This document shows, in pieces, positions 3,401 through 49,524 of a DNA stretch of 64,000 nt. The stretch comes from Oikopleura dioica. Lineage: Eukaryota; Animalia; Chordata. The stretch lies in assembly GCA_907165135.1 (NCBI GenBank), contig OU015566.1, positions 10,478,001 to 10,542,000 of the forward strand. Reading direction: 5' to 3'. Both the position numbers and the translations under genes were made by a program. The notes beneath the pieces were generated by a model that was not told the DNA's origin, did not search any database, and saw only the letters and a program-made list of their open reading frames with translations. Every line of letters starts with the position of its first letter. Within the stretch, counting starts at the first letter, position 1.

Positions 3401-4225
3401 GAATCTTGATCATCGAAAATTATTTCCTATATTGACATTTTATCATCTTTCTTTTAAAAATTTTAGACCACGTGGTTTAACATCATATTTCTAAACGCTT
3501 TTGACCCGTCATTTTGGGTTCCTTCATTATCCGCTTACACTTCGTGTTCAAAACAACACTCTTTCTGTAAAATCTCCTGATAATATAAACAGAAAAATGG
3601 ACTTTTCTAACATGTTGCGAGCGTAGCAGAAACACGTGCTTCTTGATTTTTGAGCGATACAAAATTACTAGCAGTAACTGAGGTACAAATTTAATTTTTC
3701 AATATTATTGCGCGCGGGATGCGAAAGTTTTCAAAATAGGATGCTGCGATTTTGCCACGTGTGAGCGGCGTTTAATAGAGTTGATAGGTACTTATCTCGC
3801 AATTTAAAAATTTAAAATTTTCAAAAGAACCAAAAGCTGAAACGTGGCTTGTCTGACGAAGATCCCCTAAAGACCCTGGGACCGAGCGAGCATTATGAGT
3901 ATAACAGTCGGATTAAGGGTGTACCCCTGTCATGTTCGTTGCATCTGGCTCATGATTTTCTACTGTATATTGTTCGCAATCTAAACAAATGGTTAAGGGT
4001 GTCACAGCCAACCGATTCGCGCAGAAACGAACGAAAAATTTATCGTCACAAGTGGATTTCCAAATATTTACTCGCAAAGGATGGATTGCACATGGAAGTA
4101 AGTAGAGGCTGATTTCTAGCGCATTTTATATCTTGTGTGAGCATACCTCTAAACTTATCTTTTTTTAAACAAACTATCTCTCTCTTGAATATTTGGTATT
4201 TATTCAAGCGAAAGTGCTGGGAAAA

Positions 4226-4600
4226 TTATTTTCTTCGATTACTTATATAACTTCTCAGAATCTGAGACTCAGATTTAATGTTTGAATCAAAACCGTAAAG
4301 TGTCAAAAATTCAGAAAGATTGCATGTTTCACGTGCCCTCTGACACGATTTTGACAAGCTCCAAATCTCGTTTATCGAATTTTCCGCGTTTTGAAATTTC
4401 TTTTCTTTCATGAAAAAATCCATTTCCTTATCATTTCTCAAAAGTTTTGTTAACAGACACTCGTCTACCATGAATTCAATAACCCTAAAGCTGGCGGACT
4501 GTTTTGACTTCAAGTCACAATAAAAGTTACGAAGGCCCTACGAGCTTGTAACGAGCGGAAAGCCGCTATCTCCTGCCGCGTCTTATCACTTTCGGAAATC
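4226..4600 (-). CDS. Possible uncharacterised protein (two visible exons)
   Basis: KISESDKTRQEIAAFRSLQARRAF joins in frame through a 32-nt GT-AG intron to SASFRVIEFMVDECLL...SNRRK*. Confidence 0.3.
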
Positions 4601-4701
4601 TTGCTAACTTATTTAACTATTGCCTTACGGTCGCACTGAAATTTTAGAAAGCTTTCTAGCATCTTAAAAGTTCGATAAGATCACTAACTCCTCCTTTTCA
4701 G

Positions 4702-5032
4702 AATCCAAACTAAGCCAGGCCAGAAGATCGAAATCACCTTTCCCCATTTCCAAGTCGACTTTTGTCAAGCAGCTGGTGTTTCAGTCTACGACGGCCAAAA
4801 ACTCGAAAGCAAAAAGGTCGACACGTACTGCGGGATTGACAATCCTGATACATTCACTTCCTCGGGCAACGAGGTCCAGATTCAGGTCGGTATCCTCAAG
4901 CATAAAGCGGAAGAGGCAGTTTACTGTTTCTCGTAATTTTAGACCAGTTACAAGAGATTCGTTATGATATATCCAACTGGTGACACGAAAACGTGGGGTC
5001 TTCGACCCTAAACACACCATGTTTTTGCATTA
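4702..5032 (+). CDS. CUB-domain protein, last two exons (upstream exons unresolved)
   Basis: IQTKPGQKIEITFPHFQVDFCQAAGVSVYDG...DTYCGIDNPDTFTSSGNEVQIQ matches the CUB consensus (I.L.F..F....C....VYDG....YCG...P....SSGN). A GT-AG intron leads to a terminal exon ending TAG at 5032. Confidence 0.75.
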
Positions 5033-5217
5033 GATTGCATCCTAAACACGAGTTCTTTTTAATGACGCAAGACAGAAAGCTTTGGCATAATAAATGAGAT
5101 TAATCTAGCTAAATTTCTCTAAAACGTGAGATGAATCAATTTATAATCATCACTCTAAAATAATTACTCTAGGCTTATCAACAACAGTCAAACAACCCCG
5201 GAAACGGAATCTACTTG

Positions 5218-5979
5218 ATGATCGGCTATCGAATCGCCCCAGAAGCACCTCGAACGCCGCCTCCGTCTCAAGTTCAGCAGATGATGATGCCTGGTCTCAA
5301 CCCCGGCCTCAATCAGAACCAGATTCTTATGGCTTACGGGGGAGCTGCTTTTCCCCAACAAGCTTACGGGCTTCAGCCAGTTGGGCTCGCAGGTGGTTAT
5401 CAAATTATTGGCCGAGCTACTACTCCTCCACCACCGCCACCTCCTCAACCAAGAACACCAGGAATGGGTACCAAAATGCTCTAAAAAGTTCATTTCTGAA
5501 CTTATTTGCCGAAAATTATGCTGAACCCATCAAAGCCCCAAAACGAGCTCCAAAGAAAAAGGCGCCTCCAAAGAAGAAGAAGCCGTCAGCTAAAGGAGAC
5601 TACATCAAAGCTGGAATTCAAAGAAATCTTGCTGGTAAATTCACTCAAACATTATTTTGCTAAATATTTCTTTTAGCTGAAGCTCGCGCCCGAGAAGCCG
5701 AACTCGAAAAAGAACGCGAAATCAAAGCCAAGGTAAGCTCGAGTGCATAGTTCGTTCTCTCAAAGTTTTCTTTAGGCCAACAAGGTTCTGAAGAAAAGGC
5801 TTGTCTTCTTGATCATCGGTCTGGTCATCGTTACAATCGGAAACGTGTGGTTCATTCTTCACAGAAGAAAGATCGCGCTCGAAAAAGAAGCGGAAAAACT
5901 GGGCGAGAAGAAGGGTGGCCTTTCTAGCGACAGTTGTAAAAGTGACGAGCCGATTTACTCTTCGCTGGATCAGATCTGA
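5218..5979 (+). CDS. Low-complexity (Pro/Gln-rich, Lys-rich) single-pass membrane protein; may be one gene or two
   Basis: ORF 5215-5484 is P/Q/G-rich. It is followed by exons PKKKAPPKKKKPSAK..., AEARAREAELEKEREIKAK and KRLVFLIIGLVIVTIGNVWFILHRRK...*, linked by GT-AG introns. The join between the first two blocks is unresolved. Confidence 0.5.
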
Positions 5980-6208
5980 TCCCTTTTGACCCCGCCCGAA
6001 CTCTTCACCTCAAACTGCCAAATAACTCAAGATACTGTAAATTATTTTATAAAAAAGTCGCTATTTATAAGTTAAAAATAGCAGTGCTACTGTAAGATTT
6101 TGACTGTACAAAGTGACAACTGATGAGCTGTTCTAAAAAGACTGTAAATATAGATTATTTATTCATTCAAGAAGAAATAGTTTTTGTTTTATTCGTCAGG
6201 TCAGGTTG

Positions 6209-7000
6209 TTACATCAGGTTGAAAGTCACCATCGTCATCATCCCATGGTCGGATTCCAGGAAGTCCTTCAGCGCGATCTCATCACCAGCGGCAAAAATCT
6301 TATAATTACACGCCGAGCTATTGTCACGTTACTGTACCTGTTCTAAGACAGAGTCAAGCTCGGCTTGATCAGAAGCTTCTGGCAGATTTCCTGTGCGTCT
6401 TTACCCGGATCAAATTTGAAATGTGAAAACAACAACGACTACCGTTCGAAACTTATTGTCGATAATGAGGATTTATAGATCCGTCGTTGAGATGATGAAT
6501 AGCGAGAAATTGTTTCATCTCGATTCTTGAGAGCATTCCGTTGCCGTCTTTGTCGATGAGGCCGAAGAAAAGTTTGGCTTGAACTTCCATATCTAAAACC
6601 AACAGAGTTTTCAGCGCGCTTTCGACGACTAACCATCGGTTTCCATAAAGCCATACGCCTGAAGAACCTCGTCGAAAGCAACTTTTCCATCGCTATTGCC
6701 ATCGAAGAGGAACTGAAAGACTTTCGCCTCGACTTGATCAGCTCCGATCGACGCGATAAAATCCTTAGTCGGCACTGATAGATCATTTTCGTCGATTTTA
6801 CCCTCGAAAGTTTTCGAAAACTTTTGGAACTCCTTGTTGATCCACATTTTCTTGAAGCCAAGCTCGATGAATTTCTTTTGAAGCTCTTCTGGTGCCTGGG
6901 CTGATCGAAAAGGTTTGAAAAAGTTCACGAAATAAACTTTTTGCGTAGTACAAATTAAACCTTTCCTAAAGACATGTTCGGATGTGTCTTACTTGGACTC
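6209..7000 (-). CDS. EF-hand Ca2+-binding protein, NCS/calcineurin-B-like
   Basis: Canonical EF loops FDGNSDGKVAFDE and IDKDGNGMLSRIE. The terminal exon is IFAAGDEIALKDFLESD...FNLM*. The start codon is uncertain (about 6975-7130). Confidence 0.75.
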
Positions 7001-7257
7001 TGAGAATCTCTATCTGATTGCTATGCGCTAAGCGAGGCCGGCTAAATCCGCCTCGATGCAGTAAAATGGATCAGCACTTGCCCTTAGTACTTCCTGAGGT
7101 CGGATCCAAAATGACGATTTTCTAGATCGCCAAACTTTGTTTTGTACTGGAGTAGGGATTTACTCAGTTTGAAAAGAATTGAAAGGAATGCCAGTCAGTT
7201 CTTTTTTGATTCCCTCGCGGGATGGTATTAAAGAAGGAGCCCCAAAGATGCCAAGGA

Positions 7258-7784
7258 ATGGTTTATCAAAGTCAAAAGAGCAACGGGCTAAAGAATTAGC
7301 TTGGTAAACCTGAAAGTGCATTTTACTGGACGCAAAAAGACGTCGCTGCTTGGATCGAAAAGCTCGGCTACCCGCAATACAAGCTTAGTTCATAAAACCT
7401 CGATTCCAAAGACAATTCTTTGGACGAGATTTTAGAACTAATTAAGCCATGTTTAACTCTCAACAATATTGATGGACGAAAACTTGTCTTGGTTGAGGCA
7501 TCGACTTTGCCGAAAATCGGCATCCATGATTTCGAGCACATCAAGCGAATCTGCGCGGAAGTTCGGGAGTTGACGCGCTTGCCAATGCCAGATTGTCAGT
7601 TGTCGATTTCAAGGGAGAATTTGAGCACTGAGAATAAACTTTGGTACCAAAAGAGTCGATCCGGTAAGAATTTTCAAAGAAAACTTTTAATTCAAAGCTT
7701 TCAGGTCCAAAGGCGATCGCGCTTTCAATGAAAGACATAGAAGAGTACAACATCCGAAATGGAACGCATACTATTCCTAAGTAA
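7258..7784 (+). CDS. SAMD15: SAM-domain protein, SAMD15-like
   Basis: YWTQKDVAAWIEKLGYPQYK...PCLTLNNIDGRKLVLVEASTLPKIGIHDFEHIKRICAEVREL closely parallels SAMD15 (W..EDVA.WI..LGFPQYK.CF..N.I.GRKLI.V..S.LP..GI.DFE..K.I). Three short introns. Confidence 0.8.
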
Positions 7785-8456
7785 ACTGTTTCAACTTTAC
7801 AATCGCTATAAAAACTGTAAATAATTTAAATATTTTAAAAATCTGAAGCTTGTCTTAACCTTAAGGGGGTAGAAACAGCTTTCTCGATTTTGGACTGTAG
7901 CTACATAAAAGAAAACATAAGATTTATTTATGTGAACGGAAATTCCTCATAAATGCTCCTAGAAAAGGGGTCGAGGTTCACAAAACTGTGAATAAAATTT
8001 GTTTAACTATCAGGTGACTCGAGATATTCGTGTTTGAAAACTGGCGAAAATCGAGAATTTCGGAGAGATGAATTGCTTCTGAGCCCGCTTACTCAAATAA
8101 TTGATGACTAAAACAACTTTCAAGGGAGATGTTCCTAGATCTAAGATGTATCTATCTAAAACTGAAGAGAAAATTTGAAAATGTAAGATTCTTTTGTCTG
8201 TAGCGCCGGTCAAAAATCGCCTTTTTCTGAAAAAAGCTGTTTCTACCCCCTTAAGCAAAAAATTGAGAACCTAATGGTGACTGCTTAATGGCAGCCGATT
8301 CGACTCGAAAAAGTTACTAAGAGCGCCTAGACAAATGAGGTTTTTTTCGTTGAGAGAAAATTGAGAGAGTCGCTATGAATGAATAACCTGTTTAACTGAA
8401 TAATATAAATATCAGTGAGTATTCTTAGTGCAAAACATTCGATTCAGATTCGAATA

Positions 8457-8958
8457 ATGAGCAGCCAACAGAACAGCCAAGAAAAAACTTTGTCAGATCT
8501 TGGGTGGTCTGAAAAAAGTTCCCAAGATCAAAGGGACTCGTTGGCTAATTGCAGAGAGAAAATGCACTTTTCAAGAAGGTATCGACAGCTTCATGACACG
8601 ATTGCAAGCGAGGTAAGCTTATTGAAAGTGATAAAAAGGAATTAAACTTTTATTTAGCGGCTTTTCATGCTCAACAAAGCTTTTGATCGCAGTTCCATCT
8701 TCGACACTGTCGCGAGAACACAACTTTGTCAAAGAATGGACGATGTTTATGACTCTCTTGGGCTTACAGGAGGTCCATCTGGTAGAAAATGATAACCTTG
8801 TTTCTTTTTAAAAAAAATTAGGTCCTAAGGCGATCGCATTCCCGATGACAACCCTTGAAGAGGGACGGCCTGACGTAGGGCAACTACAAGTGAAGGGGCA
8901 AAACAATATCCGAAGCGAAACTTACAAGAAAGAGAATCACAGTGACTCGACGAAATAA
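8457..8958 (+). CDS. Small uncharacterised protein (3 exons)
   Basis: MSSQQNSQEK...DTIASE|RLFMLNKAFD...GGPS|GPKAIAFPM...DSTK* with two in-frame GT-AG introns. Confidence 0.6.
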
Positions 8959-9229
8959 ACTGATTCGTTGATCTTCGTTTTGGAAGAGGAAAGCAATGAG
9001 TTTGCTTTATCAGCAGCTCATTCTCTTCTTCATCCGATTAACCCTTTAGGCGAACGTGGCGTTTTAAGGATATACGGTATATCATATACCCGATAAAATT
9101 AAACTTTCATAGCGCCTAAATACGAAGTCTGATCATTTTTATTTCAAAAGCAATCCTACTTAAAATTGTGCGTTAAATCTAATTCTGGTACTTTTTTAGA
9201 AATTTTCATAAGAATTTTCCTCTTTAGAG

Positions 9230-38591: not shown

Positions 38592-43884
<5,293 letters not shown>

Positions 43885-46229: not shown

Positions 46230-47695
46230 GCAGCTTCAAAGTGGAGGTGTTGGTCGAGCTCAAGCATGAGAAGAACATTCATCAGGGTTTTCCTGAGCGG
46301 CTCCTCTTTAGTCGGAAAAGATAAGGTGTCACGAGTGCCTTAAAAAGTGTTTGTCTCTTAGGAAGGACAAATTCAATACTTATCGAGAGCGGATATCGAA
46401 ATGAAGACTGACTGTCTTTCTCTGGTAGAAGTTCGCCGTCTGATAGAGCAGGGGAAAAAATAAAGCAGCCAAAAATTGCTGATAGACAAACCATACTGAC
46501 TGGAAACTCGCTTGGAATGTGAATTTTATATCAAAACCCCGACACAATTTTAAAATTAACTAGGTGTACCGCAAATTATTCCAAGATTTTGATTCTGACG
46601 CTGTCCCTTTAATTTTATAAGGCTTTACCGTCAATTTTATCGAGGAAAATTGACAGTTTATCGCTTCTTTTAAATAAATTGATTTTTAGCTAATCGATCC
46701 ATCCGGAAAAGATCAAGTCTTTTCTTCTAACGACTGGGCGATTTACTCTCTCCTTGCGCCTTCGGTCGACTTCTCCAGCTTGGTGAAGGCCTCTTTCATC
46801 CTGGAAGGATGCCTCGATGCAGCTTTGTATCCCGATGATGCTCAAAAACCGCCACTAAGGAAGCTACTGAACCAAATTTACTGAAGCCAATTGAATCAAC
46901 CAGTTACTTGTGTATTTTAACCTTTACCGTACTCTTTATTTGATGGACCCCAGAATTTTATTTTTATTTTGTAAATAGATCGGTTCCAAACCACCCTATT
47001 TTTTTCTTTTCATTCAATTTTTCAAAAGATTGGACACACGAATTTAGTGCTTTTGACAAGTTGAAGCTTTTATGTAAATTTTTCTGTCTTTTGAGTTAAG
47101 AATAAGGAATCAATTCTTATTCGATTGACACATTTTTACTGGAAGCATGAGAAATCTAAACTTCCTTCAAATTATATTATTAACGGATATAAATTTATGC
47201 TGCTTTGATGCCATTTTTTGCTGGAAATACTGTCAGTAAGGATTTTCCGGCCACTTTTTTTGTTCTGCAACCAGAAGAATACGCTACTACTTTCACCGAA
47301 CGATCTTTGTTGCTTGCTCCGTTACGTCATCAATAACAACAGCCTACCTGTATTCAGTAAACTGTTAGCTTAAGACGTGTTTTACTATATCAACTGTTGC
47401 TTCCGCAGGTTACTGCCAAACTGCCAATTTATGTTTTACCATCGTCGCGCTCTGAAATCAAAGAGGAGTACCACTTGATGACTAAACATTTATTGTCTTC
47501 AAAAATTCTGAGCGACTTGCAAAAACGCTCATTACTGCCATAATATTCAACCTTTGAACAATTCGACAACCAAAAATAGAAACTCCCAAATTTGAAATAG
47601 AAAGAACTTACGCAACTTTCTGAATGAAAGTGCTCTGAATCAATAAACAAACAATTCGGCCTATATTCAACTTCTTGACTTTTGTTACCAACAGA

Positions 47696-49391
47696 ATGGC
47701 ATTGAGAAAGATACGCGTTTTGGAACTAGCGGGGCAGGGATCTAAATTTTTGCCGAAAATCAATTGCGATTGCGACGCAAAATACTCCGGAAATTGCGAT
47801 GCGATTGCGATTTTTGTCGCAAATTGCGAATTTTTCGCGAATTGCGATTTTGTCGCTATTTGCGAAATTTTAGAGAAAAAAGTAACTTTTCATAGAATTT
47901 AAGAAAATTTTTTGAGGTCAGGCTTTCAATTAAGCCTTAAAAACACAGAACATAGGCTCTGAGTCAAAGAAAACTCATGTCAGAATAACAAGGGAGCACT
48001 TTGACAAGACCGAAATTCGCAAAAAAATCGCAATTTGCGAATTATTAGCGAAAACTGAGTTGCGATTGCGATGCGATTGCGATTCGATCAAAAAAGTTTT
48101 TGCGATCGCGAATTTTCTGCGAAATTTCGCATCGCAATCGCAAAATATTCGCAAATTGCGATTCTCGCGAAAAAATTTAGATCCCTGTAGCGGGGTTAGC
48201 GCCAGTTCCATATTGTGGGCAGGTCTTGGCGGATTTAGGAGCGGAAGTTATTCGAGTTGATAGAGCTGGATCAGGTTTTCTATCTCTAATGGGCTACTTA
48301 ACTATTTTTAGCCTTCAACATTGATCAACAATCCAGAGGAAAGAAATCCATCGCGTTGAACCTCAAAGACCCTTCTGGCCAAAAAATCCTTCGCTCGCTC
48401 GCTCGTTCCTCCGATGTTCTCCTTGATCCCTTTCGCCCTGGTGTCATGGAGCGCCTCAACTGCGGTCCAGAGCGCATCGCAAACGATCGCCTCATCTTCG
48501 CACGGTTGAGCGGTTTTGGCCAGACGGGGCCAATGCGCGACGTAGCTGGACACGATATTAACTATTTAGCGCAGTCGGGTGTTCTTGATTCCCTCAGAGA
48601 TTCCACTGGCAAACCTTGTCCTCCGGTGAACCTCGTCGCGGATTTCGCTGGTGGAGGAGTTATGATGGCGCTTGGAGTAACCTCAGCGATTATCGAGAGG
48701 GGTAACACCGGAAAAGGTCAAGTTCTGGACCTGGCAATGTCAGAAGGAGCTGCGTACGCTTCAGGCTTTCTTTGGTCAATGAGAAGTCTTTTCCCGGGAG
48801 CAAAGGGAACCAATATGTTGGATGGTGGAGCCCCGTTCTACGGGTAAGCAACCCAATTTCACGATGAATCATCATCTTCACCATTCAGCGTTTACGAAAC
48901 GAAAGATGGCCGATTCATGGCCTTGGGTGCAATTGAGCCGCAATTCTACCAAGTATTTCTTGAGAAAAGCGGGTTGAAAGAGCTCGATGATCTTCCAAAT
49001 CAAATGGACCAGGAAGAATGGGGAAAATTGAGGAAAATCATCGAAGAGAAGTTTTTGGAGAAGACTCAACAGGAGTGGGCAGATATTTTCGATATGACTG
49101 ATGCATGCGTGAGTCCTGTGATGACCGCTGAAGAAGCCGCAGAAAATATACATAACAAAGAGAGGTTTTAATCGAAATAACTTCTGTTTTATTCATTTAT
49201 TCTGTAGGAATTCATTTCTTCTCGATGAGCACGGCCAGTTCTTTCCCCGTCCTGTCCCAGGATCAAGCACTTCTACCGGCTTCGTCCCAACAATCCAGCC
49301 AAATGTCGGCCAGCACACAGTTGAAATTCTATCCGAGCTCTATTCAAAACGCGAAGTCCGCAAATTCCTCGAAAATGGCATCGTCTCATAA
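47696..49391 (+). CDS. AMACR: Alpha-methylacyl-CoA racemase (CoA-transferase III fold); exon 1 is interrupted by a MITE
   Basis: [13 protein letters not shown][insert][97 protein letters not shown]. Confidence 0.95.
47735..48187. mobile_element. hAT-like MITE with GCGAT(T) subterminal repeats, inside the AMACR coding exon
   Basis: TIR CAGGGATCTAAATTTTT / AAAAATTTAGATCCCTG; exact 8-bp TSD TAGCGGGG at 47727-34 and 48188-95. Confidence 0.95.
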
Positions 49392-49524
49392 ACTTCTATT
49401 TTCTTACAGTTCATAAATTTAAATTTATTTTTATTCCTCCTGATGTTCAACCTCTTGCCTGATTTCTGTGATTGACCTTGATTTCTTCATTTATTTTCTG
49501 ACGCGTTTTCCTTTAGAAGTCAAA

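Follow-up and report, generated by a model that had tools for sequence, protein, structure and literature searches.

A young hAT-type MITE insertion splits an invariant motif of alpha-methylacyl-CoA racemase in Oikopleura dioica: segregating lesion or intron in the making

We analysed a window of 64,000 nucleotides of Oikopleura dioica contig OU015566.1 (assembly GCA_907165135.1, positions 10,478,001 to 10,542,000 of the forward strand; all coordinates below count from the first letter of this window), in which a short non-coding transposon lies within the first coding exon of a gene (Table 1). Judged from its sequence, the gene is an alpha-methylacyl-CoA racemase (AMACR; CoA-transferase family III): its homologues are alpha-methylacyl-CoA racemases that carry the Pfam domain PF02515, they are collinear with it over the full length, and identity to vertebrate AMACR is 50-57%. 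With the transposon left out, the five coding segments between 47696 and 49391 encode 369 residues. Equally long is P0230, a protein called on a JGI contig whose 1264 nt leave no room for the introns; it shares 89% identity with the public model P0226, and its 90% cluster holds two proteins from Bergen O. dioica, CBY22239.1 and CBY31818.1, which are named AMACR in UniRef. In an alignment of larvacean, ascidian, hemichordate and vertebrate sequences, human included, the residues G13, L14, A15 and P16 are invariant, and the insertion point lies exactly between Gly13 and Leu14. The window belongs to chromosome 1 of the Okinawan reference assembly OKI2018_I69, which was made from one male with its haplotypes merged, at a heterozygosity of ~3.6% (PMC8008620).

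Table 1. Features of the interrupted AMACR gene and of the inserted element (window coordinates; a slash within letters marks a candidate splice position).
Feature	Positions	Strand	Remarks
29-nt "first exon" of CAG5106401.1	47208..47236	+	MPFFAGNTVT; donor GTAAGG; joined straight to exon 2
AMACR exon 1a	47696..47734	+	ATG and codons 1-13; same peptide in uninterrupted L001, L002 and L034 and in transcript-derived P0230
Left TSD copy, 8 bp	47727..47734	.	TAGCGGGG; direct repeat, spacing 461
hAT-type MITE, 453 bp, non-coding	47735..48187	.	ends confirmed by X29 DNA contigs
Left TIR	47735..47751	+	CAGGGATCTAAATTTTT; candidate donors CAG/GG (intron from 47738) and CAGG/GA (intron from 47739)
TAA closing the read-through ORF	47900..47902	+	68 residues counted from ATG
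Right TIR	48171..48187	-	sole element-borne AG near the 3' end: TTTAG/ATCCCTG, AG ending 48180
Right TSD copy	48188..48195	.	TAGCGGGG; its TAG gives the AG ending 48190
AMACR exon 1b	48196..48274	+	26 residues (to 48273) and 1 nt; frame resumes after 461 nt
AMACR intron 1, GT-AG, 37 nt	48275..48311	+	same intron position in L001, L002 and L034
AMACR exon 2	48312..48843	+	CoA_transf_3 domain; Pfam PF02515 on homologues
AMACR intron 2, GT-AG, 45 nt	48844..48888	+	joint 48842>48888 (cut +1), 22 RNA reads, sister lineage
AMACR exon 3	48889..49164	+	matches P0230
AMACR intron 3, GT-AG, 43 nt	49165..49207	+	the other three open in-frame options are not GT-AG
AMACR exon 4 with stop codon	49208..49391	+	

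The public annotation presents this gene differently. The 90% cluster of the exon-2 open reading frame contains the NCBI protein CAG5106401.1 (Oidioi.mRNA.OKI2018_I69.chr1.g2825.t1), an RNA-hinted AUGUSTUS model that does not splice the MITE out and skips exon 1 altogether, dropping all 39 conserved N-terminal residues. The exon skip is most simply a repair made by the predictor around a masked repeat, and the locus documents a mis-modelled gene in public annotation.

The inserted element ends in perfectly matching terminal inverted repeats (TIRs; CAGGGATCTAAATTTTT at both ends, 17/17 nt) and stands between two identical copies of an 8-bp target site duplication (TSD), TAGCGGGG. A first-pass annotation of the window, made from the letters alone, had described a 453-bp hAT-like MITE with an 8-bp TSD splitting AMACR between codons 13 and 14, and had predicted that read-through stops at 47902 and leaves a null product when the element is not spliced; both descriptions are borne out, the latter by the TAA. 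Open reading frames within the MITE reach at most 78 aa and provide no capacity for a transposase. The TIRs of hAT elements are short and begin with 5'-CAG or YARNG, and the first seven nucleotides of the present TIR, CAGGGAT, are presumably the same as the terminus of Ac. The 8-bp TSD, the short TIRs starting with CAG, the non-coding interior, and the multiple copies and insertion polymorphism described below place the element among the MITEs of the hAT superfamily. It is also densely repetitive, holding in both orientations 19 of the 52 copies of the hexamers TTGCGA/TCGCAA found in the window. Within the 64 kb there was neither an autonomous hAT transposase element with matching termini nor a further copy of the MITE family; a CAGGG-ended element at 41260-43334 was considered as a member and rejected, as it is intronic and belongs to a separate family. 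The only Rfam match, IS128, is a chance hit below threshold (26 bits, where the gathering score is 80).

The extent of the family was evaluated in X29, a DNA sequencing run from the same lineage, taken from another individual in another study. Word depth in this run was 4,000-9,000 inside the MITE and ~120 outside it. Alignment to the MITE recovered 310 contigs, 129 of them at an identity of at least 99%. These contigs depart from the window sequence exactly at 47735 and 48187 and continue into other flanks, and the loose ends thus confirm the boundaries of the element independently. Word depth and contigs together therefore indicate a multicopy family of roughly 35-70 copy equivalents, and the number of members nearly identical to the AMACR copy suggests recent activity of the family.

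Uninterrupted versions of exon 1 were found in four independent alleles: one of the same lineage (X29), one in a Logan contig that is ~92% identical (L034), and two from more distant lineages (L002, a JGI contig, and L001, an ENA contig). In X29, a contig with a depth of 129.6 and a divergence of 2-3% runs from 47727 through GGCAGGA directly into 48196, and reads GAA CTG GCA GGA TTA GCG, i.e. ELAGLA. X29 and L034 each have a single copy of the target at the empty site. Compared with the window, exon 1 differs at 6, 16 and 20 of 118 nt in L034, L002 and L001, respectively; all these differences are synonymous, and 39/39 residues are identical. Exon 1 is accordingly intact, and from its substitution pattern evidently under strong purifying selection, in every other allele found. 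Full-length AMACR proteins derived from transcripts come from the sister lineage only, and all of them have the intact N-terminal motif. The reading frame that runs from exon 1a into the MITE has no relatives in a collection of 15 billion proteins and shares words with none of them, and an antisense frame across the right MITE junction has no record in the same collection; since no junction frame is on record, the insertion allele has been sighted once only. Based on the four uninterrupted alleles, the MITE insertion in AMACR is derived and young, and it is found only in this assembly. The first-pass annotation had named a rare heterozygous null among the findings that would speak against splicing, and the four empty alleles bear this out in part, by showing that the insertion is not fixed.

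The target sequence of X29 differs from that of the window at three synonymous third positions, two of which match L034 and one of which matches all empty alleles. The contig was considered as an excision footprint and this was rejected; it is simply another haplotype. Only the window haplotype ends codons 12 and 13 in G. Both changes lie inside the TSD and are present in both of its copies, so they predate the insertion.

Transcript data from the same lineage reach only the middle of the gene. Two RNA runs filed under the same species label (X5 and X6) gave reads that are 90-95% alike, align in part and have zero coverage over exon 1; their loose read ends match the sister-lineage contig L002, and the runs represent a diverged lineage. 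In the single same-lineage RNA library, contigs span 48405-48843 only, i.e. a part of exon 2, and one contig breaks off at the end of exon 2, leaving six letters unaligned, the pattern expected of a spliced transcript. These data contain neither a junction read nor a read retaining the MITE.

Next we evaluated the splice sites that had been proposed for the element. Every coordinate of the first-pass annotation is correct: the GA donor does lie at 47739-40, and the AG acceptors do end at 48190 and 48199. Computation also reproduces the claimed products: splicing out 47739-48199 removes 461 nt and gives ELAGQAPVPYC, a protein of normal length with the substitution L14Q, and the acceptor at 48190 is likewise in frame and adds 3 aa. 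The accompanying claim that the TSD supplies both acceptors stands for 48190, whereas the AG at 48199 belongs to the exonic flank outside the TSD. The notion of built-in, in-frame sites fares similarly, in that both pairs do keep the frame, yet no more than by chance: across the MITE, 74 pairs of a G* donor and an AG acceptor keep the frame open, and with so many pairs the in-frame property is not special and is to be expected when any G can act as donor. None of the 74 restores the wild-type peptide. Removal of exactly the MITE and one TSD copy can be drawn in nine registers, of which one ends in AG; it begins with CG (47730-48190) and falls outside the G*-AG class. In introners, removal restores the coding sequence; here the frame can be kept, but the peptide is never wild type.

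The sequence context of the candidate sites was also compared with that of established introns. GA-AG introns of O. dioica are reported to have AG upstream and A downstream of the GA (PMC7072748). The candidate donor at 47739 has neither, reading GG/GAT with GG upstream and T at +3; the neighbouring CAG/GGA has the expected flanks, yet as a donor it is GG. Pyrimidines make up 9/20 of the last 20 nt at all three candidate acceptors, compared with 12-14 in the three real AMACR introns, and the acceptor ending at 48199 is preceded by GCGGGGTTAG. The MITE RNA is predicted to fold into a closed structure with its TIRs paired (dG -180.7 kcal/mol, z = -9.95). In this model, the perfect 17-bp TIR stem would bury the donor and the TIR acceptor, yet it would also draw both ends of the element together. 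The proposed products alter the G-L-A-P motif, either by replacing L14 with Q or by inserting three residues into the invariant loop. EDC3 and, as probable only, PAN3 had been put forward as genes of this window with GA donors in use; they were not found by two Pfam scans of 20 ORF segments of the window.

Exonic insertions of TIR elements are known from Ac/Ds (hAT) in maize and Tc1 in C. elegans, where splicing at several cryptic sites in or near the termini usually gives imprecise products and leaky alleles; those cases rest on RNA and phenotype data, whereas removal of the AMACR MITE is a proposal from its sequence. The concept of a transposon turning into an intron has precedents in introners, in Fritillaria and among the intron gains reported with the first Oikopleura genome. 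Introners of Micromonas and Aureococcus (Huff et al. 2016; Gozashti et al. 2022, PMC9860276; PMC11282704) are, like the AMACR MITE, short non-autonomous transposons with TIRs and TSDs in coding sequence, and element and TSD each contribute one splice site, the same arrangement as proposed here. They differ in being removed at the RNA level, in having hundreds of intronic copies and in restoring the coding sequence exactly, whereas the AMACR MITE is one exonic copy for which no G*-AG pair is exact. Oikopleura does not figure in the main text of the 2022 study (PMC9860276).

Larvaceans offer closer comparisons. According to Henriet et al. 2019, as relayed by PMC11282704 and PMC13326754, the larvacean Fritillaria borealis has introns with TIRs and TSDs and a modified U2 spliceosome, and MITE-derived introns dominate in its genome (as summarised in PMC11282704); U12 splicing, in the same accounts, has been lost in both this species and O. 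dioica. Most Fritillaria introns are there described as AG-AC or AG-AT; their 3' site derives from TAC and the U2AF paralogues are duplicated, whereas O. dioica uses G*-AG; moreover, they are established and spliced, whereas the AMACR MITE is found in one assembly and its splicing is only proposed. For O. dioica, PMC8008620 and PMC4122922 give 11-12% non-GT introns, mostly GA-AG and three-fold enriched among new, lineage-specific introns. Introns arising by transposon insertion are listed for Oikopleura in a review table (PMC3443670). The G*-AG and transposon-insertion introns of the OdB3 genome (Denoeud et al. 2010, via PMC4122922 and PMC3443670) come from one species complex with the present window and follow the permissive 5' rule invoked for the AMACR MITE. 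The reported GA donors of O. dioica read AG/GA-A and the median intron is ~49 nt, compared with GG/GA-T and 461 nt for the AMACR candidate.

Taken together, we lean towards reading the locus as a very recent hAT-MITE insertion that creates a polymorphic null or strongly hypomorphic AMACR allele, and not an established intron. A non-autonomous hAT MITE would have inserted very recently into AMACR exon 1 on the assembled haplotype of the Okinawan male I69. As DNA, the resulting allele would be null, its premature stop yielding a product of 68 residues, and it most likely segregates as a loss-of-function allele or strong hypomorph, probably carried heterozygously. Cryptic G*-AG splicing may plausibly remove most of the MITE from some transcripts, given a permissive spliceosome; the particular junctions proposed earlier look weak, and no such splice yields the wild-type protein. 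That non-GT introns are common and that transposon-derived introns are reported in larvaceans counts against a null allele. The same two facts, together with the enrichment of G*-AG splicing among new O. dioica introns, the existence of in-frame G*-AG pairs, a TIR stem that brings the ends together and the cryptic splicing of Ds and Tc1 out of maize and C. elegans exons, speak for a nascent intron, which we regard as a doubtful but serious alternative. A permissive U2 spliceosome would here pair a G* donor in or near the left TIR with an AG that lies in the right TIR, in the TSD or in the flank, removing ~443-461 nt in frame and leaving a functional AMACR altered by one residue or longer by 1-6 residues. 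The candidate junctions are 47738/48200 (L14Q), 47738/48191 (+QAG), 47732/48191 (+A) and 47737/48181 (+QIPVAG). However, no junction read was seen, with RNA reads covering no part of exon 1, and the RNA-hinted public model has no such junction; no donor/acceptor pair restores the wild type; the donor GG/GA-T departs from the reported AG/GA-A and sits within a perfect 17-bp stem; the acceptors are poor in pyrimidines; and the change would fall in an invariant motif, in an allele sighted once. There is only a slim chance that the major splice is the very one first proposed, from CAGG/GA at 47738/47739 to the AG ending at 48199 or 48190: both pairs are in frame and the choice of 48199 keeps the normal length, but this is one of 74 equivalent in-frame choices, its donor is without both conserved flanks, the acceptor at 48199 follows GCGGGGTTAG, and L14Q strikes an invariant residue.

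Two further explanations would dispense with splicing of the MITE. An upstream start might rescue the gene through an alternative first exon, 47208-47236, spliced to exon 2 so as to bypass both exon 1 and the MITE. This is the exact structure of CAG5106401.1, and its donor GTAAGG is canonical; the product, however, would be without the 39 conserved N-terminal residues including the GLAP loop, its N-terminus is found in no homologue, and the model is most simply a predictor's repair, which together make the rescue highly improbable. That long-read assembly or polishing misplaced a MITE into the exon is scarcely credible. The family is multicopy and the insertion is seen only in this assembly, as an artefact would require, but a perfect TSD of the exact exon sequence around perfect TIRs is what real transposition leaves behind and a mis-join does not, and a run of the same study contains 0.89 of the sampled words of the stretch.

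The perfect TIRs bear on the family as a whole. Since they match over 17 nt, either orientation of the element offers CAG/GGATCT at its 5' end and TTTAG/ATCCCTG at its 3' end. A splice from CAG/GG to TTTAG/A retains 3 + 7 nt of the MITE and the 8-nt TSD, i.e. 18 nt or six codons, at any insertion; in AMACR the product would be that of junction 47737/48181. That the family is built in this way to be spliced out of any exon with an in-frame scar, whatever the target site or orientation, appears improbable to us.

The value of the AMACR locus is that of a test system, since an empty allele is at hand. If carriers splice the MITE, a single interbreeding population of a laboratory chordate would offer the rare chance to set the empty allele of a newborn animal intron beside the allele with the insertion and the product of its splicing; this would be a direct test of intron gain by transposon insertion and of how far the relaxed 5' splice-site rule of Oikopleura buffers transposon damage. 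Splicing through built-in scar sites, with a polymorphic empty allele alongside, would offer a living case of intron birth in a chordate amenable to culture. If carriers do not splice, it is an ordinary segregating knockout allele. A caution applies to the data that would decide: RNA from mixed animals mapped to the reference shows a false 461-nt "intron" that stems from empty alleles, and genome-wide claims of MITE introns must control for this. Reads that run straight through GCGGGGTTAGCG or GCAGGATTAGCG derive from empty alleles and are therefore not evidence of splicing. Reads joining exon to TIR cannot come from empty alleles, so that only these, or RNA of genotyped homozygotes, show splicing.

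A further contig bears on the insertion site. L033, a metagenome contig of the same lineage, is 97.3% identical to the window from 48195 on and matches exon 1b at 78/79 nt. The 187 nt that precede codon 14 in this contig have no counterpart in the window and are rich in CCTGAG/CCCTGA sub-repeats; this stretch ends in ...GAGCCCAG (CAG), flush against TTAGCG, i.e. codon 14. A lookup of its left junction returned only the L033 contig itself. By its sequence, L033 represents another structural allele that breaks at this very boundary of codons 13 and 14, a hint at more than one event there.

The alpha-methylacyl-CoA racemase (AMACR) haplotype interrupted by the 453-bp hAT-type MITE differs from the alleles that are empty at this site in the codons preceding the insertion. 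Codons 12 and 13 read GCG GGG only in the insertion haplotype (window positions 47731 and 47734, and also 48192 and 48195); in each of the four empty alleles, codon 12 is GCA or GCT and codon 13 is GGA. The insertion haplotype carries two derived A-to-G changes in a span of 4 nt, which lie within the target duplication and are present in both of its copies. These changes are therefore older than the insertion of the MITE.

A different arrangement was found in L033, a metagenome contig of the same lineage (ENA ERZ27290310 k119_1530280), positions 1-188 of which adjoin window position 48195/48196 when the two sequences are compared. Upstream of AMACR codon 14, this contig has 187 nt of unrelated sequence in place of that of the window, rich in CCTGAG/CCCTGA repeats and ending in CAG flush with codon 14. 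L033 is a second structural allele with the same boundary as the MITE insertion, and its unrelated stretch may be a further element or the result of a transposition that went wrong.

The public AMACR model, CAG5106401.1 (339 aa), begins with MPFFAGNTVT in a tiny upstream exon (window 47208-47236) and continues at 48312, leaving out the true exon 1; the omission is most simply explained as a mistake in the annotation to which the MITE gave rise. A marine metatranscriptome contig from run X1, 99% alike, matches up to the final base of exon 2 (48843) and ends in six unaligned letters, which fits a spliced AMACR mRNA of the window's lineage in the wild.

Upstream of AMACR, a conserved 41-nt piece (47397-47437) is covered by sister-lineage RNA reads at a depth of about 24, clipped at both sides, and is probably UTR of a neighbouring gene. 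Downstream, only about 130 nt (window 49389-49520) separate the AMACR stop from the next plus-strand gene, which is choline-transporter-like and begins MGCCWGGNKD; the two may form an operon pair.

Elsewhere in the window, a GRK-like kinase coding sequence reaches INPPFKPD, is interrupted by an intron of about 2.47 kb and resumes after it. This intron holds a hAT-like insertion of a family different from that of the AMACR MITE.

Non-coding element within the GRK-like kinase intron
Window position	Length	TIRs	Perfect 8-bp duplication	Sub-repeats
41260-43334	2075 bp	CAGGGTTYGAAATCG	ACCCCCGC	GGCTAGGC
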